From the NCBI GenBank assembly GCA_964188305.1, contig OZ076885.1: a stretch of DNA of 64,000 nt; one strand, 5' to 3'. Shown here piece after piece: positions 3,001-62,676 of this stretch. Below the pieces are notes generated by a model that was given only the letters and a program-made list of their open reading frames with translations, ran no database searches and was not told where the DNA came from. Source of the DNA: Podarcis bocagei. Its lineage: Eukaryota. Made by a program: the position numbers and the translations under genes. The stretch's first letter is position 1. Each line of letters starts with the position of its first letter.

Positions 3001-3184
3001 ATTTACCTGGGAGTAGACATGGTTAGGACTGCACTGTCAGCTGAGAAAATTGTAAGCTATGTGATACAATTGTGGCATGTTCTTATAGCTATGATGATTA
3101 GACAGTGCTTTGAAGTTCAAGGCAAGATCTAACAATACAATCACATTTCAATTACTTGTAATCTTAACCTGTTGTTCTCTTTAG

Positions 3185-3277
3185 TCCCAGGTGAATCACC
3201 ATACTTCTGCCAGTAATGAAACCTATCAAGAACGCCTGACAAGACTAGAGGGTGACAAAGAGTCTCTCATACTTCAG
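3185..3277 (+). CDS. PPFIBP2: PPFIBP2 exon, SQVNHHTSASNETYQERLTRLEGDKESLILQ (phase 0/0)
   Basis: ttag|TCC...CAG|gtatgc, 93 nt; in-frame alternative acceptor 6 nt downstream (cag|GTG at 3191). Confidence 0.93.
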
Positions 3278-4187
3278 GTATGCAATTTATAGCATCACCA
3301 TTTGCATTTGGAATTTATTGGTGTGTTTGTTGCTCATTGTGAAAAGCAGGAGAATAGAATATCATTATCTCACGTATTTTATATTCTGCTTTTCAGGGCA
3401 AGGACTATTTTTTAAAAATCCCTGTACCTACTTCAAATGAAAGAATTTTGGTCTTGGCCTGTGTGGTGTTGAATTCACTTTATTCTTTTAACAGTGTTAT
3501 TTGAAATATAATAAAAGTCTTATGCTATGTTTCTTGGGGGTTAATTGCAGCAACTGTTAGTTATTGTAGTGGTTGTTGTCAACTTTTAAATTCAATTTCC
3601 TGTCTGAAAATTCTACATATTTTAGATACACATATATATTAAAATATTTAAGTACTGAGAGAGCAGAAAACCTTAGGTCTCTATACTCTAAATTTCTGGG
3701 TCAAATAGATTGTGGATTCAACTAGATATCAGCAACAGTAACAAAAAACCCCCCAAAAATTCACATCCCTAATGGGCTATTGACTTTTAAGGGGGACCTT
3801 TTAAGTGTGACCCCATAGCCTTTAATAGTGTCTTGAAACTGCTTGACTGCTGCCTCTCTCTTTATCTCTGCCAGGAACATGTGTTCAAAGCTAGAACAAA
3901 GCTCACTTCAGCGTTTAGCAGTAGGAAAATAGTATCAGTCCATTTTGCATAGCCTAAAAAAATTGAAATTTGAGTGAGAAACTCCAGGCTGTAATGTTTG
4001 ATGGTAGCACCTCTTGTTCCCCTGCTTACTTTTGTCTGAAATGAAATGTACAATTGTTCTCAAACTTGGGAGTTCAGTTTTGGTTGGTGGTGCTCATTTT
4101 ATCCAAGAAGAAAGAGCTTCTCAGTCCAAAGTCTTAAAACAGAGAGGAGAAGGAAAGGAAAGATTTGTGTGATGGGCTTTTTGAGTA

Positions 4188-10075: not shown

Positions 10076-10148
10076 TAGAGGATAGCTCAGTCAGTAGAGC
10101 ATGAGACTTTTAATCTCAGGGTCATGGGTTCAAGCCCCATGTTGGGCA
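10076..10148 (+). pseudogene. tRNA-Lys pseudogene or tRNA-Lys-derived SINE head
   Basis: GGATAGCTCAGTCAGTAGAGCATGAGACTTTTAATCTCAGGGTCATGGGTTCAAGCCCCATGTTGGGC aligns to vertebrate tRNA-Lys; 5' acceptor stem broken and CpGs decayed to CpA/TpG. Confidence 0.85.
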
Positions 10149-11417: not shown

Positions 11418-14329
11418 AATGTTAGTACCCAAATGGCGACACTTTCATCACATCTATGTCACAGACAACATGCATTCATGAGCATAAAGAACTGGTTATC
11501 TGTAAAGGTTGGGGCTCTGACTTCTTTCCCAGCCATGTGGCAGGAGCAGTGGAGGAGAGTCAGAGCTTCTCAGTAGTGTGCTCTAACCGTGGTTTCAATG
11601 TGATATGTGGGCCAAGCCTTACCCTATCTTTGATCATCACAACCATTGACTAATTTACTTGGTATCCAGCTATGTTTCCATTTGGTCTCGCTCATGATCC
11701 AAAAGCACGTGAGGCAGCTGCATCAGCTGAAACTAAGCAGGTCTGGGTCAATTCAGTGTCTAGATGGAAGGCTGCCCAGGAACCCGATGTGCACTGCCTT
11801 GCATGCCTTGAGGAAAGGCAGGATACAAAGAATGTTAAATAAGCACCATCTTGGATGTTTGGTGTATTTAATTTCCAAATACTGCTTTCTGATATGAAAG
11901 TGCTGTCCCTTAGTCATTGGTGTCTTAGGCTAGTTAGGATTTCTGGGTGGTAAGAGGAAGGTGATGCTCGTTTTTCCTTTTTTGCTATGCTTGAGGTCTC
12001 ACTTTCAGCACTGAGGAAAGTTCTGGGTCTAAGCACTGGTGAGGTATGTTTGAAATCAGTCTTTGGCTCTTTTTGCAGGGACTAAGTGTTCAAACAGTCA
12101 CCCTCCTGGCAAGTTGCATGCTTCTCCTTTCTTTCTAACTTCTCTTTTTGGACTCGTGGTGTGTAAACAGAGAAGTGGAAGGCTGCAATCCTCTGCCTCT
12201 TACTGTGTCATCTTGAAATGGTGCAAGAAGCCACATTCTCAGCTGTGTTTTAACTTAAGCGAATATTCCATTTATACCACAGCTGACACACAGCTCTTGT
12301 AAAAAGTGCCGCCCTCATCCTAGCGTGATTCTTGCTGAATTTTGGGTAGGACTCTAGCCTGTTTGTTTCCATATTGCTTTAACGAAGGAATGGATTGTAC
12401 CAGCTTCAACTTTCAGCAGTGTATTTCCCACAAAGTACGTATTAAATGTCGTGGAGTTTAAATGGAATATTCTTTTGGGATGTTCTGTTATACAGCATGA
12501 GTTCCTGCTTGCTTTTGTCTTTTTATTATCTTGGAACAGGATGGTGGGGATTTGTGACGGATTGTAAATTCCACTTACCAGGTGAATACTCTCTGTGGGT
12601 GAATACCTTGGTCTTACACCAACTATGCAATTCAAGCTAGCTAATATTCCTCAACCCTGTCACCATTTCCAAGTTTCCAGTAAGCATAAATATGCCTGTG
12701 CTGCTGTTTTTTGTTACAAATTCATTTCATGCTTAGATTTCAGGAAGATTAAACAGCACTTCAGTGTGAAAACTGAACACAATGTGTTAACTTCGTGCAA
12801 TGTGGTTTTTGTGTTGCGGTTTAGACATTAATATGACTTTAAAGACAAAGCAAACTTAATATATGACATTGTTTTAACAGTTTCTGCAGGGTTTGCATTT
12901 TTGGATCCTTGAATTTGGGTCTTCCTTTTTTTTCTTAAGAAAGGAAAAGATTTGGAGGGGGTGTTTCTTGCAACTTACTTTGATCAGTAGTAAATGACAG
13001 ATTTATAGCAGTCAGAATAAAACAAAGACGTTGCATCATGTACTGCCAAATTTTGTTATGCTTATTTATAAATGTACTAAACAATATAGATTATACTCTG
13101 TCTGGCTGTCTCTGCTACTGTCTTTTTACAGATCCTCCTGAAACCCTTGTAGCCAAAATTAGCTCTGCACATGACATGTATTATCTTTTCACTTCAAAAC
13201 CAATAACGCAATCTGTACTTTTACTTCTTACAACTCTGTATTTATTCAAGTTGCCTTCCAATTGCATCATACCGCTGGAATACTCTGTAATTTCCCCAGA
13301 ACAAAGTGGGTCATATTCCACTAATGAACTGCTCAACATAAGCATCTGCTTGAAGATGGAAATAATGACTTCCACATGTTAGCAACTGCACTGTGGCATT
13401 TTATTCAAGCTGTGCTTCAGATAATTTTTAGTTCAGTAGACTTTCTGGACCACAAGTCTCATCTGGCTAAAATTAAAGCAGCACCACTGAAGTATAACAT
13501 CGGCGTTTGCTTTTCTAAAAACTAAAAATTAGGGAAGTTGCAAGGGTGCCATGCATTGTCACTTTAAGTAAAGGTTGTATGTAAGTCCTATTCACACATT
13601 TCTGTGTTATATTCCACAGATGTGTTCACCAACTATTTTGCATCTCTTACTTTTGTGCTAGTTCGACATGTCTTTCTAACGCTCTGGATGGTGATCTCTG
13701 CTTGCTTCCTTTTATAACTGCTAGCCAGATCCAAAGTTTGTCTTTACTGTTTGTGGCATAACACCGAAATCCATCTGTGTTGAATTCAAGATTAGAGCTC
13801 TTGCTTTCTAGCTGACCCTATTTGCATTTTAATGCCGGCTTCAGAAATACTTGAATTGGGACAAGACTCTCAACAGTTAGCTCCAGATCCTGTTTTCAGT
13901 GCCAAGACTTAGTCCTGGATAATGTGAAATAGCAGTTAGGGGAGAGTAGCTTTCAGCTTGTGCACTGTATCACTACACCACACAAGCAGTATTTATAAAT
14001 TGGGGATTAAGAGGGGAGGTATTTTGGCGGTGAGAGTTTAAAACAGGATTGGACAAATTCATGGACCAGATGCCTCTTTAGCCATCAGCTGCCATGGCTA
14101 TATGGAATCTTCTCCTTCACTAATATAGCACTGCTCTATACATATCCACAAGCTACTTTTCTGTGTTCAGGAACTGCGTGCTTCTGGAATACTAATGACT
14201 TGGAGAATTTTGTTCAAGAGTGCCGGGTAAATTGTTTCTCACTACAAGCCTGGAGACTTTCTGTCCAATAGAGCTGCTCCAGAAACCCAAGAACGCCAAT
14301 GTTGGAGATGGCAACAGGGGGTAGCACTT

Positions 14330-14492
14330 TTTTCCCTTGGCACATAGTTAAATTATGAAAGTCGTTCCCAGAGGAGGCAATGATGGCCACCAACTTGGAT
14401 GGCTTTAGGGGAGGATTGAATGAATTCATGAAAGATAAGGCTATCCATTACAACTTGCTGTGATGGCTATGATCTGCCTCCACAGTCAGAGG
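14330..14492 (+). mobile_element. CR1 LINE 3' fragment
   Basis: gatggccaccaacttggatggcttt...ggattg..tgaattcatg..agataaggctatc resembles the amniote CR1 ORF2 end; a second similar fragment lies near 14030-14110. Confidence 0.7.
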
Positions 14493-48615: not shown

Positions 48616-49081
48616 AGGCTAAGGATAGGAGCTTGAAACACAGCATTGGAATACTGTACTTATTTCGGACTGGGTTATTTATACATGATCATCTTTGCAT
48701 CTCCTAAGCAGGAGCCAATCAACTAACGTTATTGTCATTTTTGTGTTCAGCACCTTGAAACTGGGTATTTCCCTTTGAGAGGTATTTTGTGCATTGTACA
48801 GTGTTGTTGGTGGGCATTTGCTCTGCAGATGTGTTGCTGAGTAACATACGTGTGCTGTACCTTAATATTTTCTTTCTTTTTTAAAAAATTATTGGTTTTC
48901 AAAGTATCAGTGGTTCCTCGCATGCACAAGAGATCTGTTGCGCAAATGAAGGCTCCCCTGCATTTGGGTGGAAGCACTGCATATGCAAAGGCAGGTGTGA
49001 AGAGAGTGGCATCAAACACATGGAATTGTTGATTAAAGAAACAAATTTGGTTGGATTCTACCAGTCGTCATCCCCCCCCAT

Positions 49082-49124
<43 letters not shown>

Positions 49125-49353
49125 TACAACATACATACATATACACAGTATGCAGGTTTTGCAAATCACATTTTTAAGGTTTGGGCTCTTTGTTATAATA
49201 ATCAGGCAAGCTTGAATTTGCAGGTGAAGAGGCTGTCTGCTGTAAACTGAGAGCAACTGTGAATTAGAGGGCTGTACGTGTGTAAGGCAAGGAAAAGTTG
49301 CAAAGCCTAATACAGACTTGCTGGTAATTTGAGTTTCTAATAGCTTAAATTTA

Positions 49354-50050
49354 CAGTTACAGATAGGTAGCCGTGTTGGTCTGCCATAGTCAAAATAAAA
49401 AAATTCCTTCCAGTAGCACCTTAAAGACCAACTAAGTTAGTTCTTGGTATGAGCTTTCGTGTGCATGCACACTTCTTCAGATACACTGAAACAGAAGTTG
49501 CCAGATCCTTCTATATAGTGAGAAGGTGGGGAGGGGTATTACTCAGAAGGGTGGTGGGAATGGGAGATTGGCAGATAAGCTGAGATGAGCCTGTTGACGA
49601 CTCTTAATGACTGCAATAGGTCTTACAGGAAAAGGCAAGGGGTGAGAAGGTGAAAAATGGCTTAGTCATGTATAATGAGATAAGAATCCAATGTCTTTGT
49701 TCAGACCAGGTCTCTCCATGGTTTTGAGTTTGGTAATGAGTTGCAATTCAGCAGCTTCTCTTTCCAGTCTATTTCTGAAATTCCTTTGTAGTAAAACAGC
49801 TACTTTGAGATCTTCTATAGAATGTCCTGGGAGATTGAAGTGTTCTCCTACTGGTTTCTCTGTTTTGTGATTCTTGATGTCAGCTTTATGTCCGTTTATT
49901 CTTTGGCGTAAGGTTTGGCCTGTTTGTCCAATATAGAGAGCTGAAGGACACTGTTGGCATTTGATGGCATACACAATGTTAGACGATGAGCAATTAAATA
50001 GTCCCGAGATGGTATGTGTGATGTTGTTGGGGCCAGTAATGGTGTCAATA
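49354..50050 (-). mobile_element. Penelope-like retroelement, 5'-truncated: GIY-YIG endonuclease domain plus 3' region
   Basis: Open frame FNCSSSNIVYAIKCQQCPSALYIGQTGQTLRQRINGH...VGEHFNLPGHS...EREAAELQLI...GLN, stop at 49666; followed by a PLE-type terminal region with a hammerhead motif; 5' boundary approximate. Confidence 0.95.
49447..49484 (-). ncRNA. Minimal type I hammerhead ribozyme of the Penelope element
   Basis: Minus strand GUAU-CUGAAGA-A-GUGUG-CAUG-CACAC-GAAA-GC-UC-AUAC: intact CUGANGA and GAAA core, stem I GUAU/AUAC, stem II, palindromic AGCU stem III, NUH site CUC. Confidence 0.85.
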
Positions 50051-50607
50051 TTAAGTATATAGATAGGTTTGTGAAATGAACGAATGACATCACTGAATAT
50101 GTTCAAAGCACGAGCAACCTTTTTTCCAGTTATGATGGCAGCATGCTGAATAGTTGAACCTGCATGTATGCATCTTGAAATGTTCTTGACTGCTGGAAAA
50201 CAGCTTTTTTTCTGAAAATGTAGAATAGCACCCAAATTATGAATAAGGCAAACCCCTTGGATTTATTTATTTTTTTACTTAAGTTACTGCAAAATGAATT
50301 GCCTCAAAATTAATATTTTTGGCCCTGCTATCCTATTAACAGACTATATTCAATGGAAAGGTGTCAGTTACTCTGAGTATGGCTAATGTGCAAATACTCA
50401 AATTCTAATGTTGCTTTTTATAAAATGAAATTTAAAGTTGGAGAAGAATGACATTCAGAAAAATGACTCTGAAGATAGTAATATAATTAAACCTATTTTT
50501 TCTGAAGATAAAAGTACCTCTTGTATATGCACAATGGTTCAGAAAATATAAAGCATGTGGTGTTTGAATTAGCTGTTTTAATTTCATCAAGCTGAATGGT
50601 TTTACAG

Positions 50608-50673
50608 ATGGAACATTCAGAAGGAACAGTAATGCAAATAGGGGAACTTTCTCAAGGAATAAACAACCTCACA
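50608..50673 (+). CDS. PPFIBP2: PPFIBP2 long-isoform exon, MEHSEGTVMQIGELSQGINNLT (0/0)
   Basis: tacag|ATG...ACA|gtaagt, 66 nt; similar to recalled PPFIBP1 MEDSEGTVRQIGAFSEGINNLT. Confidence 0.92.
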
Positions 50674-51491
50674 GTAAGTACTAATTTATCATTCATAACC
50701 TCATCGTATGTGCTAATTCAAAACTGAGATGAGGTGTATTGATATGTTAATTACTCATGTTCATTTATATTCATTTATAGTTAAAACTCCTATAAGTAAG
50801 ACTATATTATGGAGTTCAATTAAAAGCACAAATTTGACCTAAGTAAATTTACATTTTAAGGACTGGAATGGAAATATTTATAGCTTTGTAGATTGCACGT
50901 GAAATGAGTTTATCTTTCCTAATGACTTAAGCAAATTTTCAGTCGTATGAGAAGAGAACTTTAGGTTATTACATGCATTTTGCAAAACAAGTCAAATGCA
51001 GAAAGGGATTATCTGCATAGGAAAACGTGTTTAATGCATGCCACAATTGCCTTTTGATCCCAGTCTGCATTGCGACATTTGCTGAACTAGCTTTCCAAGG
51101 CTATTAGTTATGTACAAATGCCAGTAAAGGACATGAGCCACTGCTTTATTTGTTGAACAGTTACATCTATTTCTCCATACACCTGACATTCTCAAAAGTC
51201 AAAGTCTTGTTGCTTATACTATGCATGACCTTCATTCCACACACTATAAACACTATAAATTTCAGGGATTAAATTTGCCTGAAAGCAAATGAAATAGCTA
51301 AGCAAATTACTTGTGTGCAACTAGCTTCTACTGTTTCCAATTAGGTTAGTAAACTGGATGTTATATATAATAATTATCTTGAATAAGCTGTTCATAATTT
51401 ATGCCTATGTAAATCTCCGCTAAATCTGTAGAGGATCTAATCACTTACATCTGTGATTTATGAAGTCTACTATGGTTTGTTTTTTTTCCAG

Positions 51492-51560
51492 ACTATGTTA
51501 AGCCAAGATCAGTTGCTGAATGATGATAGATTTTTAACAACAACGTTTGAGGACTGGTGA
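51492..51560 (+). CDS. PPFIBP2: PPFIBP2 long-isoform terminal exon, TMLSQDQLLNDDRFLTTTFEDW*
   Basis: ttccag|ACT...TGG TGA, 69 nt; similar to recalled mammalian TMLSQDQLLND...DW. Confidence 0.9.
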   Translation, partial: TMLSQDQLLNDDRFLTTTFEDW

Positions 51561-54500
51561 TGAAGATTCCATGTGACCAACACCGCTCTTAATACCTCAG
51601 TTGTATTAGGGGATATGACTGGTCCAGGCTGGGTGCTCTGTTTAAAAATATGCCACTGAAATGTGTGAAACCTTTTTAAGTGCTGTTTTTCACATCTCCC
51701 ACCCCAACAGCAATGAAACCCCTAAGGTCTAGGTACTTAATACATGCAGTCAAAGAACCTATGCAACATTTTTAGAAGTAGTAAAATTAAGAGTATGTAA
51801 ATATATTTTAAAGCACAGTGAGCAATTTACTAGTCAGTGATCCATTTTCTATATTTTGTACTTGCTCATGGTGCATATTATTGGAATCACGTTAGTTTTC
51901 TAAGGTATCACCCCTTATGAATGGTTAGTACAACCAACACCATGTTTTTCTTCCAGTCTGGTATAACGATCCCCTGGTATGATAAATATGCTAATTATTT
52001 ACTTGACCACTTACACTAAAGCTGTATCTAATGTGTCTCCTGTTGGACACTAACACTCCCACCCTTTAAAGACTATTCCAGTCCAGTATTCAGTTTTCCT
52101 CTCTCCCTCCCAACTTGTGTTCTGCATTGTACATGAGGTCTGCAATAAGAAAATGCATTGTCCTTTACTTCATAAGGCCAAGTAGTGAAGTGGTACCCCA
52201 CTGGCATGATTATTTCTTTCTGTGACATTCTCCCTTACCAGCATCTCTCATATTGGACGAGCTAAAAAAAATCTCCACTCAAGATGCAATGAAAATATTC
52301 ATTTACCTTAATACTGCATTTCTTAAATGCTGCAGTTTCACTCTTGCAGTATGCTTACAGTGGATTAATTTCTAAGGATTTGTGCTCAATGAGCTTTTTA
52401 CCATAATAGCTAAAAACAAAACACTTCTCAAAAAATGATGTTTAGAGAGCATGAACGGACCAAATGGACTACCAGAAAGCAGTAAAACCACCAGCTACTT
52501 GAAACGTAGATAATATTGTGAGGACTGCCTTCCTTAATAATGCCTGCTATAAATTTAAGGAATTAATTGGAAGAAGGGGGTTACTTTAACTTTTCAACCT
52601 AAATTGTGAAGCAAGCAGTGGCCCTTTCATACACCCAGGCTTTTTTCTGTCAAAGTCTCAGTAGTTCTGCAGATAGAATGTTGTAAGCCTGCCACAAATC
52701 AGGAGATTAAGATAAGTTTTCCCATTTCATAAATATTCTGGAGGCAGAAGTTTCCACACTAGGGGAAAAAGTTGTCCTTAATTTAAAGCATTTGTATTAC
52801 CTACTTTCTTCATTGAAGCATTCATGTGATTGTTATTAGGACTGTTGTACTGCACACAGCTGCTTCTTGTTTCCTTTATGAAAATCAGAACACTGTTCAA
52901 AAACTGGCTTTATAGCAAATAGCAGTTCCATGAGCATTTTGTATCTGCTTGTTTTGTTCCTAAATCTTTGCTCATGCAGATCTGCTCTAAAGACCTTCAA
53001 GCCTGCTCTAGTGTAGTACTGTGGACATCTACACATCATTAGGCAAGGGTACCACCTGCTGGTGACAAAGTTTTGGTCGCAAAAAACACACATTCCAAAT
53101 GTAACTTATGTTGCCATCCTAATAATAATAGCACAACTCTGAATGTTTTTATTTTGCAAGAGAGAGATCAACATGCAGCCAGCAGACATCCATTGAATCA
53201 AACTGTGAAAGCTGGGGTGGGTGGCCGTTTGGACTTTACTATTAAGTAACAGGTCCTTGAATGCTTGTACAAGATGAATACTTGAAGCATAAGCTACTTA
53301 ATGGCTTTTCAGCCCTGGAGAGCTTTTGAACGTATTTATATCTGTCATTTCTTACAGTTCTTGAGCTAGTGCACGCTCTTAACGTCAAAAGCATGAAAAA
53401 GTATGTTGTATGTCATTTTTACAAAGGTGACTGTTGAAGCATATGCATGCATACAGCCTGTACTAGGGTTTGTGGTCTGGATGATGCCACCTCTCTGAAG
53501 CAAAGCAGGGCTGAGTCTGGTCAGTGCTTTGGGTGGGTGACTCTCAACGACATGTATGTCACCTTGAATTCCGTAAAGGAAAAAAGGTTGGCACTAAGTG
53601 TAAGAAAATAAAATTGGTTAAAAAATGTTCCCAGAAAGGTTTTCCTATTTGACACACAGGTATGAATGTTTGGCTCAGAGAGCTCCAATGTTGCAGAAAG
53701 AGTTTCATGAGCAACAGTCAATGAATATACTTCAAGGCTATTAAGAATTGGTGGTGTAATGTTTTGAATATGAATAAGCTACGTCAAGACTTGCATGAGC
53801 AATATGGCTCAAATGTATATGTATATATTTCCTAGCTTGTCATCAGTATTATCTAGAATAGCTTATTGTGGCAATGTTTAGATTATTGTTACAGTATGAT
53901 TAGACAATGTCATAGCAGCTGGGTGGTTAAGACACTGGAAGACACTCCCTGCAGTGTCTTCCAGTGCAGTTTATGCAGGAAACAGACCATATTTGTGTCT
54001 TAGTCCAAGTACTAGGCATGGTATTTTGGCTATATGGCTTAAGGGAAGCTGTAAGAGGAGGTTTACTGCCCAAATGCTGCATACATGGTTCTGAAATTAA
54101 AGACTGAATCCTGCTGAGACTGATTGCCTGCCCCCACCCCCCACTTTTACATCCACCACCCTCCTTCCTTTGGAAGAGCACCTGTCCAACAGTGAAGCTC
54201 TTCATGCTGTCCAACCTATAAAATGGGCTTTGACTTTCATGCTCCATTGGCAGCATGGCCCCAACAGATAGGATGGTCTCAACAGTAGATTTCACTTTCT
54301 GCCTACTCGTGCATGGTTCTTACAGGAGGCACTGGTGTTCCCCCTGGTTTTCTGAGATGGGGTTCACTAAAGCTGATGGCATGTGAAAAATCCGGGCGGG
54401 GGGAGAGAGACAGTGACAGAATAATGAACATACTTGAATGGTCATTGTGAAGTAAATTATATTACTGCATCACAAACAAATTTTACAAAACAATTTGAGG

Positions 54501-54506
54501 TTTATT
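54501..54506 (-). terminator. Candidate CYB5R2 poly(A) signal (AATAAA on - strand)
   Basis: Plus-strand TTTATT about 700 nt past the CYB5R2 stop, followed on the - strand by a U/GU-rich tract. Confidence 0.6.
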
Positions 54507-54668
54507 AAATGGAAAACTGTTAGCTTCCCCGATAGCCTTTTTAAATGCAGCATTATTCTACTGGTTATAGAACTACTTTTGGACAAAAGAAGCTGCTGTA
54601 ATTACATAGTTGCAACAGTTTAAGCAGCATCTCAATGCAGAGGAAGGCATAACCTAGCACCGTTAGTA

Positions 54669-55001
54669 CAGTGGTGCCTCGCAAGACGAAAAGAATCCGT
54701 TCTGTGATTCTCTTCGTCTAGCGGTTTTTTCGTCTTGCGAAGCAAGCCCATTGAAGGATTAGCGGATTAGCGCTATTAGCGGCTTTTATCGGCTTATCTG
54801 CTGATCGGATCAGCTGATAAGCGGCTTAGTGGCTTAGAAAAGGGGGGGAGGGGGGGAAACCAGCAGGAACTCGCAATACATTGTCGTCTTGCGAAGCAAG
54901 CCCATAGGAAATTCGTTTTGCGAAGCACCTCCAAAACGGAAAACTCTTTCGTCTAGCGAGTTTTCCGTCTTGCGAGGCATTCGTCTTGCGGGGCACCACT
55001 G
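54669..55001. mobile_element. Tigger/pogo-like MITE in the putative CYB5R2 3' UTR
   Basis: TA|CAGTGGTGCCTCGCAAGACGAA...TTCGTCTTGCGGGGCACCACTG|TA; internal repeats of TCGTCTTGCGAAGCAAGCCCA; CpG-rich. Confidence 0.9.
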
Positions 55002-55199: not shown

Positions 55200-55372
55200 T
55201 TAATAAGCAAAAGTGTTTTCTTTGGCATACCCTAGCTTTTCAAGATTAGGCAGACAAGCAAACTGAATCATAGGTGGGGGTCCACACATCAGAATCAGAG
55301 TCTCACTGGCAGGGGGAGGCATATGTTCTTTTATCATGCTATCCGTAATAAAACCAGCACTATACTTCCAGT
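55200..55372 (-). CDS. CYB5R2: CYB5R2 last exon, (D)[56 protein letters not shown]
   Basis: ttcag|AC...TAT TAA, 173 nt. Confidence 0.96.
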
Positions 55373-59595: not shown

Positions 59596-60124
59596 CATGT
59601 CTTTTAGTTTATAAGCCTGAGGTGAGTGACACAAGAGAGAGAGAGAAATATTGGTAGGAAGAAAGAAAAAGGCAAACTCGGGGCACTGTTTTTCAATTGT
59701 AGAGTTCTTGTAATGACAGCCTGGAATTGAAAGATTTCCATAAGTCCAAATATTTGTGATATCTCAGCAGAACTGATGGAGAGGCCCTGCAGTCCACTCT
59801 GTCTCCCTTCCACAGAGTCTGATGAAATGACTGCTCCAATTCTACTGCAGCACATGATAGCTTAAATGATTTAGATACACATCATCTTGAAGCCCCCCTG
59901 CTTCAGCTGAGATGCTGTAACTCTTATCTCTCAGTGACCTCTGCCCATCTGTCTCTCAAGAGCACCATCACTGTTCAGTTGTCACAAATTCCTGTTGATT
60001 ACCCTCTTCGGCATACTAATGTTACAGTGTTCGGACAACAGGTGAAGTACTGCCCCAAATATCTTCTTCATCACATAATCTAGCAGCTATTTTAAAGCAT
60101 GTGGAGTCTGTGACCTTATTGTAC

Positions 60125-60254
60125 CTGACCCCTTGTATACCAGAAGTCCATTAGGTCCTCTGAAGTCAATGGTATCACCAATCTTCATGCTGTCTAAATG
60201 CTGGGACATCTTCCCACCTTCTGGAAACTTGGGGTGAATGTTTTTGTAGTAAAC
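60125..60254 (-). CDS. CYB5R2: CYB5R2 exon, [43 protein letters not shown] (0/1)
   Basis: aacag|GTT...TCAG|gtacaa, 130 nt. Confidence 0.97.
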
Positions 60255-60585
60255 CTGTTTGAAGAGGAAGTGGGGAAACACACAACAGTGGTAGAAAGAA
60301 TTTAGCCATTTTACTTTAAGGCAACAGTGAGGTGCAATGGAAAGGAGTAAATAACAACATTTTTCACTCTGCCCTTTGAGCTAAAACCAAGTGTCACAAT
60401 TGTCTGTTATCACACAAAACATGAAATAGGACCCAGAAAATCCCAGGTTTCCCAGAGTTTGTAACAAAAAAACCACTGCACTTCTATTTACCCTACCAGA
60501 TAAACTTTAAGAACTCAAGTCTAAAGTACTAAGTCTTATTTGGTCTCTGGATAAGCTTTTGGTAAGAAGTCATCCTAGAAGTAGG

Positions 60586-60820: not shown

Positions 60821-62080
60821 TCTATGACATCCTTCCCCCAGAACAGCAAAAGGTTCACCTTTTTCATTACAAAGTGTTACAGAGCATCACACAATATGCT
60901 CACAAGTCACTAATCTTTGTATCAAAGCAGAAACATCCTATCTTTAGTATGGCTGGCATAACACTGGCCCTGCCCTGTTTTATACAAAAGCCTGAAATGT
61001 ACATATTTATCAGATTTAAGGTTTTTCAACCTCTTTATTCCATGCTTGGATAACTTTCACGTGCCACATTTGTGTGCATCAGGCAGAGGAGCAAGTGGAT
61101 AAATGATGGAAGTGCCTGTATTAATACTTCCCTGTATTAATTCCCTGTATGCGCAATGATTCTTTTCAAGCCTTGCCAGAATCCTGGGTTAGATTAAATG
61201 TTGCTACTATACACAAGAGAAGACAAAACCCCACAACAGAGTGACAAACAAGGATGGCTTGAAAAGAAGTCATTAATTTAGCCAACTCAAGTTTTTCCAT
61301 CCTACTGCAGTTACTGAAGCAGTGAATGATCCAGCCACAGGGGGGGGGGGGAGTCACTTGCACACACACTGGTCCTTTAATACTTCCAATACTCAAGACA
61401 AAATGATAACAAAGTTGCTTAAGTTACATTTATTCCAATGTATCACTGAAGAAAGAACCAGCTGTTTCTGTACTTCATCTTCCTACTGTCAAGATGCAAC
61501 CAGGATTTTGAAAGCTTTTTCCTTCCCCAAGTAAAAACATTAAGCTTATTTCCTGCATAAAGCAGCACATTTAACATGCAACTATACATTTGATCGGGGG
61601 GGGGGGGGGAAATAGATCAGTACAAAGTTCAGTGGCTGGCATTCAAGATATACGTCATTACATCCCCCCACCCCTATAACCCACTAAATCCAGCAGAACC
61701 TGTAGACATATTCAGTACCCACAGTAGAACCAATCTTCAAAACACCATGAGAGCACTTTAAGGTCATTGTACACACACACACACAAATGTGAGTTGTGTT
61801 TTATTTTCAGTGCCCAAACAGACAAGCCTCTGTTAACTTGTATAATAAAGGAAGCTGAGGCAAAGTGTAATTCCCATCATTTCCACACCATTCTCTGATT
61901 CCAGAATGAGCCTATACACTTTTAAAATATGTTAATAATAACCTAGCATGCTTCTTCAGACATAAATTTTAAAATGATCCAATTTCTGATTGCAAATTGT
62001 AATTTAGACCCATGTTTATGAGAAATAGAACCAAAATCCGAGCGGGTCAAGCTACCAGCATTAAATAAATTTAAATATAC

Positions 62081-62187
62081 CTTTGTGATTAAATCAACAT
62101 AGCCTCTCACTTCATCACTAGAAACTGGAGTGTAGGCCCGGATCACAAGGTTACCGTCCACTTTGGCAGAGAGATACACATGTTGGC
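62081..62187 (-). CDS. CYB5R2: CYB5R2 exon, (G)[35 protein letters not shown] (1/0)
   Basis: cctag|GC...AAG|gtatat, 107 nt. Confidence 0.97.
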
Positions 62188-62263
62188 CTAGGTGGGAGAA
62201 ACTGTTAACTTTTCATTCCAAAGTTCATAATAGCATTAACAAACTAGCTAAACTGTTGGGCTG

Positions 62264-62423
62264 NNNNNNNNNNNNNNNNNNNNNNNNNNNNNNNNNNNNN
62301 NNNNNNNNNNNNNNNNNNNNNNNNNNNNNNNNNNNNNNNNNNNNNNNNNNNNNNNNNNNNNNNNNNNNNNNNNNNNNNNNNNNNNNNNNNNNNNNNNNNN
62401 NNNNNNNNNNNNNNNNNNNNNNN
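62264..62423. other. Assembly gap (160 N) inside a CYB5R2 intron
   Basis: Run of N; flanking exons are consecutive in the protein, so no constitutive coding exon is missing. Confidence 0.99.
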
Positions 62424-62676
62424 ATAAGCTTGAAAACACGTGGAAATCAATTTCAGGAAGATGAGGAATTGGAAACCAACACAATCTCACATTATGCTTG
62501 CAAACATCATTATTTTTAAGCTGTTACGCCAAGAAAAGTCTGTACAATCTTAATTTGCCTCCACTGACATTGGAGTTGAATCAGTTCTGAAGAGTTTCCA
62601 GAGTGATTTTCCAGAGATGGGGTGCTGTCACCCAAAAGGCTCTGTGTTAGAAATCATAATATGCAGCCATGCTTAC

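Follow-up and report, generated by a model that had tools for sequence, protein, structure and literature searches.

Hammerhead ribozymes in the introns of amniote genes (Rfam families HH9 and HH10) are canonical, active as monomers, lie in the sense of the host gene and are conserved at orthologous sites. Penelope-like elements (PLEs) carry minimal hammerheads (min-HHRs), reported in reptiles (turtle, snakes) mostly as single copies from truncated elements (PMC4209133). Going by the literature, the ribozymes in the flanking repeats of full PLEs would cut the PLE precursor RNA, and would do so as a dimer, through the palindromic helix III of two copies on one RNA. Single min-HHRs of S. mansoni give no detectable cleavage, and dimers and trimers cleave weakly (PMC4209133); among Xenopus dimer constructs, 1 of 9 cleaved (2026 preprint, bioRxiv 10.64898/2026.07.22.740005). 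The non-LTR retrozymes of animals consist of short units in tandem, lack an ORF and give rise to circRNAs (PMC7229834; bioRxiv 10.64898/2026.07.22.740005), and the second of these sources reports PLE-related retrozymes in reptiles. The hammerhead motif that we describe here lies on the - strand, at 49447-49484, of a 64-kb stretch of DNA (the window). It is an ordinary, already described kind of sequence and not a host RNA-cutting device: very probably the tail ribozyme of a young lizard PLE family, sitting in a liprin-beta intron in a 5'-truncated copy and most likely inert.

Read directly from the window, the - strand from 49484 to 49447 is GUAU-CUGAAGA-A-GUGUGCAUGCACAC-GAAA-GC-U-C/AUAC. The hammerhead core is all there (C3 U4 G5 A6 A7 G8 A9, G12 A13 A14, A15.1/U16.1 and C17), with an A at the variable position 7 (N7), and the elements CUGANGA...GAAA, A15.1-U16.1 and H17 follow one another in type I order, with helix I open. 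Helix I has 4 bp (GUAU/AUAC); C17 stands directly before AUAC, and cleavage is predicted after it (49451), i.e. between 49451 and 49450. One A is unpaired between A9 and G10.1, which pairs with C11.1. Helix II (49459-49472) is a perfect 14-nt palindrome, GUGUGCAUGCACAC, that folds in silico, in the monomer, into 5 bp and a CAUG loop. Helix III is cut down to the palindrome AGCU, in which 15.2-16.2 is palindromic and no real helix III is left. The letters given in the initial annotation (complete core, AGCU stem III, palindromic 14-nt stem II) all match the window sequence, and 49447-49484 is confirmed as a genuine, complete minimal type I hammerhead motif.

We searched the window at several levels of stringency. 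The loose core (CTGANGA...GAAA) occurs 5 times against 4.9 expected, that is, at chance frequency, and Rfam 15 gives no hammerhead family at gathering level in the whole window or at E<=10 in the 551-nt stretch around the site, the motif falling short of the gathering thresholds of Hammerhead_1, Hammerhead_3, Hammerhead_II, HH9 and HH10. Both results would suit a chance resemblance to a hammerhead, yet a full descriptor, which demands a 4-bp helix I, the core, 5 bp or more in helix II, GAAA, a palindrome as helix III and H17 and tolerates a bulge, has exactly one match in the 64-kb window and none in 300 dinucleotide-preserving shuffles, and covarying homologous motifs stand at the same element position in five reptile species. 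The shuffles and the family covariation refute a chance resemblance, which keeps practically no probability. We do not count the missing Rfam match against the motif because these models are limited for helix-III-less variants (2-bp helix III), and the variant in the window is recognised by no curated model. A covariance model trained on seven related copies, the window hammerhead among them, finds a single site in the window (58.3 bits, E 3.8e-13; next best E 0.4), and in gecko and turtle loci it finds additional hammerheads beyond the training set, often as inverted pairs. Neither pattern searches nor a repeat search nor this covariance model found a second, tandem or inverted hammerhead copy in the window, and the claim that a single ribozyme is present therefore holds for the whole 64 kb.

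The seven copies come from the window, Podarcis, Phrynocephalus, Eublepharis (three copies) and Caretta. Five of the six hammerheads from other species were located via tail homology and only one, Eublepharis L004c, via the core pattern alone; three short contigs (L006-L008) stop before the tail and contributed no ribozymes. In the alignment, 92% of cells are paired (standard pairs) and 10 of 13 pairs show compensatory changes, values that none of 500 shuffles reach; slid partners are 15-44% paired. Helices I and II are backed by both pairing and covariation. The 10.1/11.1 pair is G-C in six copies and G-U in one, and helix III is a palindrome in all seven, five times AGCU and twice ACGU. The core is mutated in some copies, with G8A in one of those from Eublepharis and both U4C and C3G in Caretta, which is what the decay of genomic copies would lead one to expect.

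For PLE min-HHRs, four traits are on record that do not depend on the descriptor with which that study had searched for them: an unpaired nucleotide at 9/10.1, G10.1-C11.1, palindromic 15.2-16.2 and covariation within the family (PMC4209133). The window motif shows all four. The likeness further covers the core, the 4-bp helix I, the long helix II, the 2-bp palindromic AGCU, the position in a repeat after an RT/GIY-YIG ORF and the mostly solo occurrence in truncated elements; there is no substantial difference, the window copy being one from a lacertid-like lizard with a palindromic 14-nt helix II. Judged by its letters, the motif agrees with the PLE min-HHR class on every sequence-level point. 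Its assignment to the minimal type I hammerheads of PLEs, with their link to dimers, had been proposed from the start, and the proposal stands: AGCU as helix III is the palindrome that the literature ties to dimeric action.

The motif is not free-standing but part of a ~690-bp 5'-truncated PLE insertion on the - strand (49357-50045). Its 3' part is the untranslated tail of the element (a pseudo-LTR part of ~310 nt, 49357-49665), which carries the hammerhead, matches the tails of L001, L003, L004 and L002 in blastn and holds the conserved blocks GGTCTTTAAGGTGCTACTGGA ... GACCAACACGGCTACC, also on the - strand by tail homology; a metagenome scan with the conserved tail blocks gave 0 matches. Upstream lies the C-terminal remnant of the PLE ORF (49666-50045, - strand; stop codon at 49666-49668), identified by Pfam and homology: its last ~126 codons encode a GIY-YIG endonuclease domain (PF01541, E 2e-6 for the last 126 codons, 28.5 bits against a cut-off of 22.6), and the frame ends ~180 nt upstream of the hammerhead on the same strand. 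The open frame as a whole runs from 49666 to 50235 (189 aa; Pfam GIY-YIG, E 4.8e-6), but we rejected it as a product derived from a PLE in its entirety, as homology to PLE copies is confined to the last ~126 codons. The best database relatives of the remnant protein are from lacertids (86% identity in Zootoca vivipara, 79% in Podarcis muralis), with matches from turtle, agamid and gecko next in line.

At the DNA level, the - strand of the window from 50044 to 49653 is 85% identical to Podarcis locus L001, and the tail after the stop codon aligns too. More generally, PLE 3' ends from Podarcis, Phrynocephalus, Eublepharis and Caretta (L001-L005) share homology with both the ORF end and the ~310-nt tail; in each compared species the hammerhead stands at the homologous tail position, followed by the blocks GTCTTTAAGGTGCYAC and AGACTAACACGGCTAC. 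Homology ends at ~50044/50045, the 5' truncation point, beyond which the ORF continues in the Podarcis copy but not in the window; RNA contigs of other copies likewise diverge from the window beyond 50045. Between this end and the flank common to the contig of a close relative lies a junction segment (50046-50119), for which no similarity was found in the window or in the fetched loci. Set against an EN+ PLE, the locus has the C-terminal GIY-YIG domain and, by tail homology across five reptile species, the hammerhead-bearing terminal repeat after the ORF. The telomerase-like reverse transcriptase domain is missing, and no reverse-transcriptase-like frame was found upstream of 50045, because the copy is 5'-truncated: it is derived from a PLE and is not a complete one. 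In the scenario we favour, a PLE copy would have inserted on the - strand of a liprin-beta intron and lost its 5' part at insertion, so that ~126 GIY-YIG codons at the end of the ORF and a tail of ~310 nt with a single ribozyme would be all that is left (49357-50045). Some ~230 nt past the 3' end of the fragment there is a (CA)n microsatellite (49079-49128).

PLE 3' ends with hammerheads also occur as closely spaced inverted pairs, in L002 (Caretta caretta; 1153-1938 and 3088-3624) and likewise in L004 (Eublepharis; 2073-2217 and 14060-14391), one of the L002 pairs having its junction within the hammerhead itself. Head-to-head arrangement is known for PLE insertions. PLE GIY-YIG segments also turn up in several NCBI gene models, e.g. 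those of a CD94-like lectin, a trypsin-domain protein and a CARD-domain isoform (P0001, P0003 and P0006, from loci L001, L002 and L004, and P0002 from Zootoca); these segments look like retroelement fragments taken as exons by automatic annotation.

The age of the insertion was judged from RNA of a close relative, aligned as reads and as contigs to 49000-54999; in unique flanks this relative differs from the window by ~1.6%. The PLE tail (49357-49546) is covered ~75-155x per strand. Most of these reads depart from the window at 49354-49356, with many different, loose ends, and hence come from other copies; their point of departure marks the 3' end of the element (~49355-49357). Over 49357-50045, reads from other copies are 95-99% alike to the window. 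The ORF part (49600-50045) is covered ~10-35x, mostly in element sense, with four uniform differences (49608, 49726, 49815 and 49884), the pattern expected if the reads reflected a family consensus ~1% away from the window copy. At the locus itself, one contig of the relative (X1, depth 10.7) joins 49134-49356 to 50120-50249 with 134 other letters in between. The relative apparently lacks the PLE here, by the evidence of this one contig with 134 unmatched letters at its joint; these letters, and the 74 nt at 50046-50119 in the window, may stem from deletion at the target site, from filler DNA at the 5' junction or from divergence of the flank. Since reads from paralogous copies are ~99% identical and the relative's contig is without the element, the insertion looks young, i.e. 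recent, lineage-specific or polymorphic. The undamaged core is accordingly explained by the recency of the copy and not by host selection. A young copy together with sense-biased RNA from its sisters fits a PLE family that is, or recently was, active in lacertid-like lizards.

The same reads bear on whether the locus could be a unit of a non-LTR retrozyme or circRNA element instead of a PLE fragment. It shares with retrozymes the type I hammerhead, the relation to PLEs and the occurrence in reptile genomes, where PLE-related retrozymes are on record; in addition, what many RNA reads share with the window is limited to 49397-49546, beyond which they continue in consistent flanks of other sequence, and a 64-nt 'goes back' joint (49484 to 49422) is present in 4 reads. 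Yet these reads come from other loci, and the window shows neither a tandem partner nor the two or more tandem hammerhead units without ORF that make a retrozyme: the 64 kb hold one copy, joined to what remains of an endonuclease ORF. The GIY-YIG ORF end, the motif and the full PLE tail form one unbroken stretch, and this contiguous homology refutes a retrozyme unit at the window locus, leaving it almost no likelihood and the PLE fragment in place. As for the 150-nt stretch at 49397-49546, hammerhead included, both alien flanks of the relative's RNA reads contain ATCCATTCCACT in element sense. This suggests an abundant short non-autonomous family, possibly tandem or retrozyme-like, sharing the PLE ribozyme module.

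From its C-terminal exons and its CYB5R-type neighbour, the gene on the + strand appears to be of liprin-beta type. Its last coding exon (51492-51560, +) ends in FEDW and a stop, according to spliced RNA contigs and translation, and two spliced contigs (X1 and X2) skip 50674-51491 (GT..AG), joining 50673 to 51492 on the + strand. Going by this RNA-supported splice, two coding exons still follow the motif, which thus does not lie in the terminal intron of PPFIBP2, to which the initial annotation had assigned it. On the + strand, the PLE and its hammerhead are intronic, and the host pre-mRNA has only the inactive complement of the motif. Both splice contigs run unspliced upstream to ~50416, past a likely acceptor at 50607/50608; the penultimate exon of the liprin-beta-type gene may be longer than it seems, or the intron may be partly retained (50416-50673). 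On the - strand, the CYB5R-type gene is recognised by FAD_binding_6 ORFs (60090-60281 and 61946-62179; Pfam), a last coding exon region at 55203-55337 (Pfam NAD_binding_1, E 2e-4) and an AATAAA poly(A) signal at 54501-54506, just downstream of which minus-strand RNA depth drops. An N run stands near 62250-62440. The hammerhead is in the sense of this gene, and the distance of ~5 kb past the poly(A) signal given earlier was right: AATAAA (54506-54501) lies 5.0 kb upstream of the ribozyme.

This orientation, together with the intact core, invites the idea of a host-adopted solo hammerhead that would keep transcriptional interference in check by cutting CYB5R2 read-through RNA, which runs antisense to the 3' region of liprin-beta. 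We followed minus-strand RNA towards the element in two stranded runs (X23 and X24) from the close relative apparently without the insertion, of each of which ~12% was read. The libraries act as first-mate-antisense stranded: the 3' end of the CYB5R-type gene (54400-54599) has only first-mate-on-plus reads, and the liprin-beta 3' UTR mostly first-mate-on-minus reads. Minus-strand depth is 16.5x (X23) and 5.8x (X24) at 54400-54599, and becomes sporadic reads within 1-4 kb. In the unique segment upstream of the element (50200-50799) it is 0 in X23 and a trace in X24 (0.89x at 50600-50799), and beyond the element (49000-49199, where the read mapping left out 49000-49133 as repeat) it is 0 in both. 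In the relative's RNA reads, ends do not accumulate where cleavage is predicted (49450/49451), standard RNA-seq being a weak test of this.

Cutting of CYB5R2 read-through, as the initial annotation had imagined it, is thus at odds with a minus-strand signal that fades to ~0 before the element, with the lack of piled ends and with a relative without the insertion. The check that it had named itself, minus-strand transcription across the site, came out negative in the relative's runs, the relative seeming to lack the insertion. Because the insertion is absent from the relative's contig, no conservation points to host use; besides, there is no second copy within the window, and single min-HHRs did not cleave when tested in vitro (PMC4209133). 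We hold a host-adopted ribozyme to be very improbable. With HH9 and HH10 the likeness is that of a hammerhead in the intron of a vertebrate gene, whereas the window motif is minimal, antisense to its host gene, without Rfam match and apparently absent from a close relative.

The reading that we prefer is that of an inert passenger, as the copy has a single ribozyme without a cis partner, and transcription of the sense strand across the locus was not detectable. A partner could also come in trans. RNA of the window copy would then pair via AGCU, and perhaps helix II, with transcripts of sister PLEs or retrozyme-like elements and be cleaved in trans. Partner RNAs do exist (tail reads at least 95% alike, ~75-155x per strand in the relative), a dimer model is published, and cofolding predicts a homodimer far more stable than two monomers. 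The fold predicted for the 38-nt monomer is a weak one (-6.8 kcal/mol), and two copies form in silico an intermolecular 14-bp helix II duplex of -30.6 kcal/mol, compared to -13.6 kcal/mol for two monomers. The dimer favoured is, however, this helix II duplex and not the double hammerhead, for which the pairing reaches only -13.0 kcal/mol. In longer context, the CUGAA of the core is predicted to pair with an upstream UUCAG. Cleavage in trans would also require minus-strand RNA from the locus, of which the relative's runs show none, and cleavage in vitro is poor even for dimers in cis (in the 2026 preprint, 1 of 9 constructs). We consider trans-cleavage very unlikely, if slightly less so than host adoption.

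These folds also speak to the suggestion, made along with the motif, that its two palindromes could promote dimerisation. In silico the helix II duplex is indeed favoured, but it sets the AGCU segments at opposite ends and is thus of no obvious help to a catalytic dimer. The Phrynocephalus copy has another perfect palindrome as helix II (GUGCACAUGUGCAC), and one could imagine that palindromic helices II, differing in sequence between this and the window copy, are an evolved second self-complementary interface through which solo copies become cleavable in trans. We give this very little credit; were it true, scattered solo ribozymes would be conditionally active on host antisense transcripts.

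A solo min-HHR from a truncated PLE, the class described in 2014, matters little alone. The lesson is rather one of procedure: when a seemingly intact ribozyme is found near the 3' end of a gene, one should look first for an adjoining GIY-YIG or RT remnant and a repeat tail, and only then for a host function.

Two further repeats were seen in the window. In the 3' UTR of the CYB5R-type gene, 54667-55000 is a repeat rich in CGCAAGACGAA-like motifs, with many internal joints; RNA covers it on both strands (~20-275x in the raw-read runs, with word depth up to ~19,700 in the contig runs), and it is another very abundant transcribed repeat family. The sole Rfam match in the window is a partial tRNA match at 10083-10140 (+; 47.7 bits, model positions 8-63 of 71), in which the ends of the acceptor stem are missing; it probably represents the head of an intronic tRNA-derived SINE.
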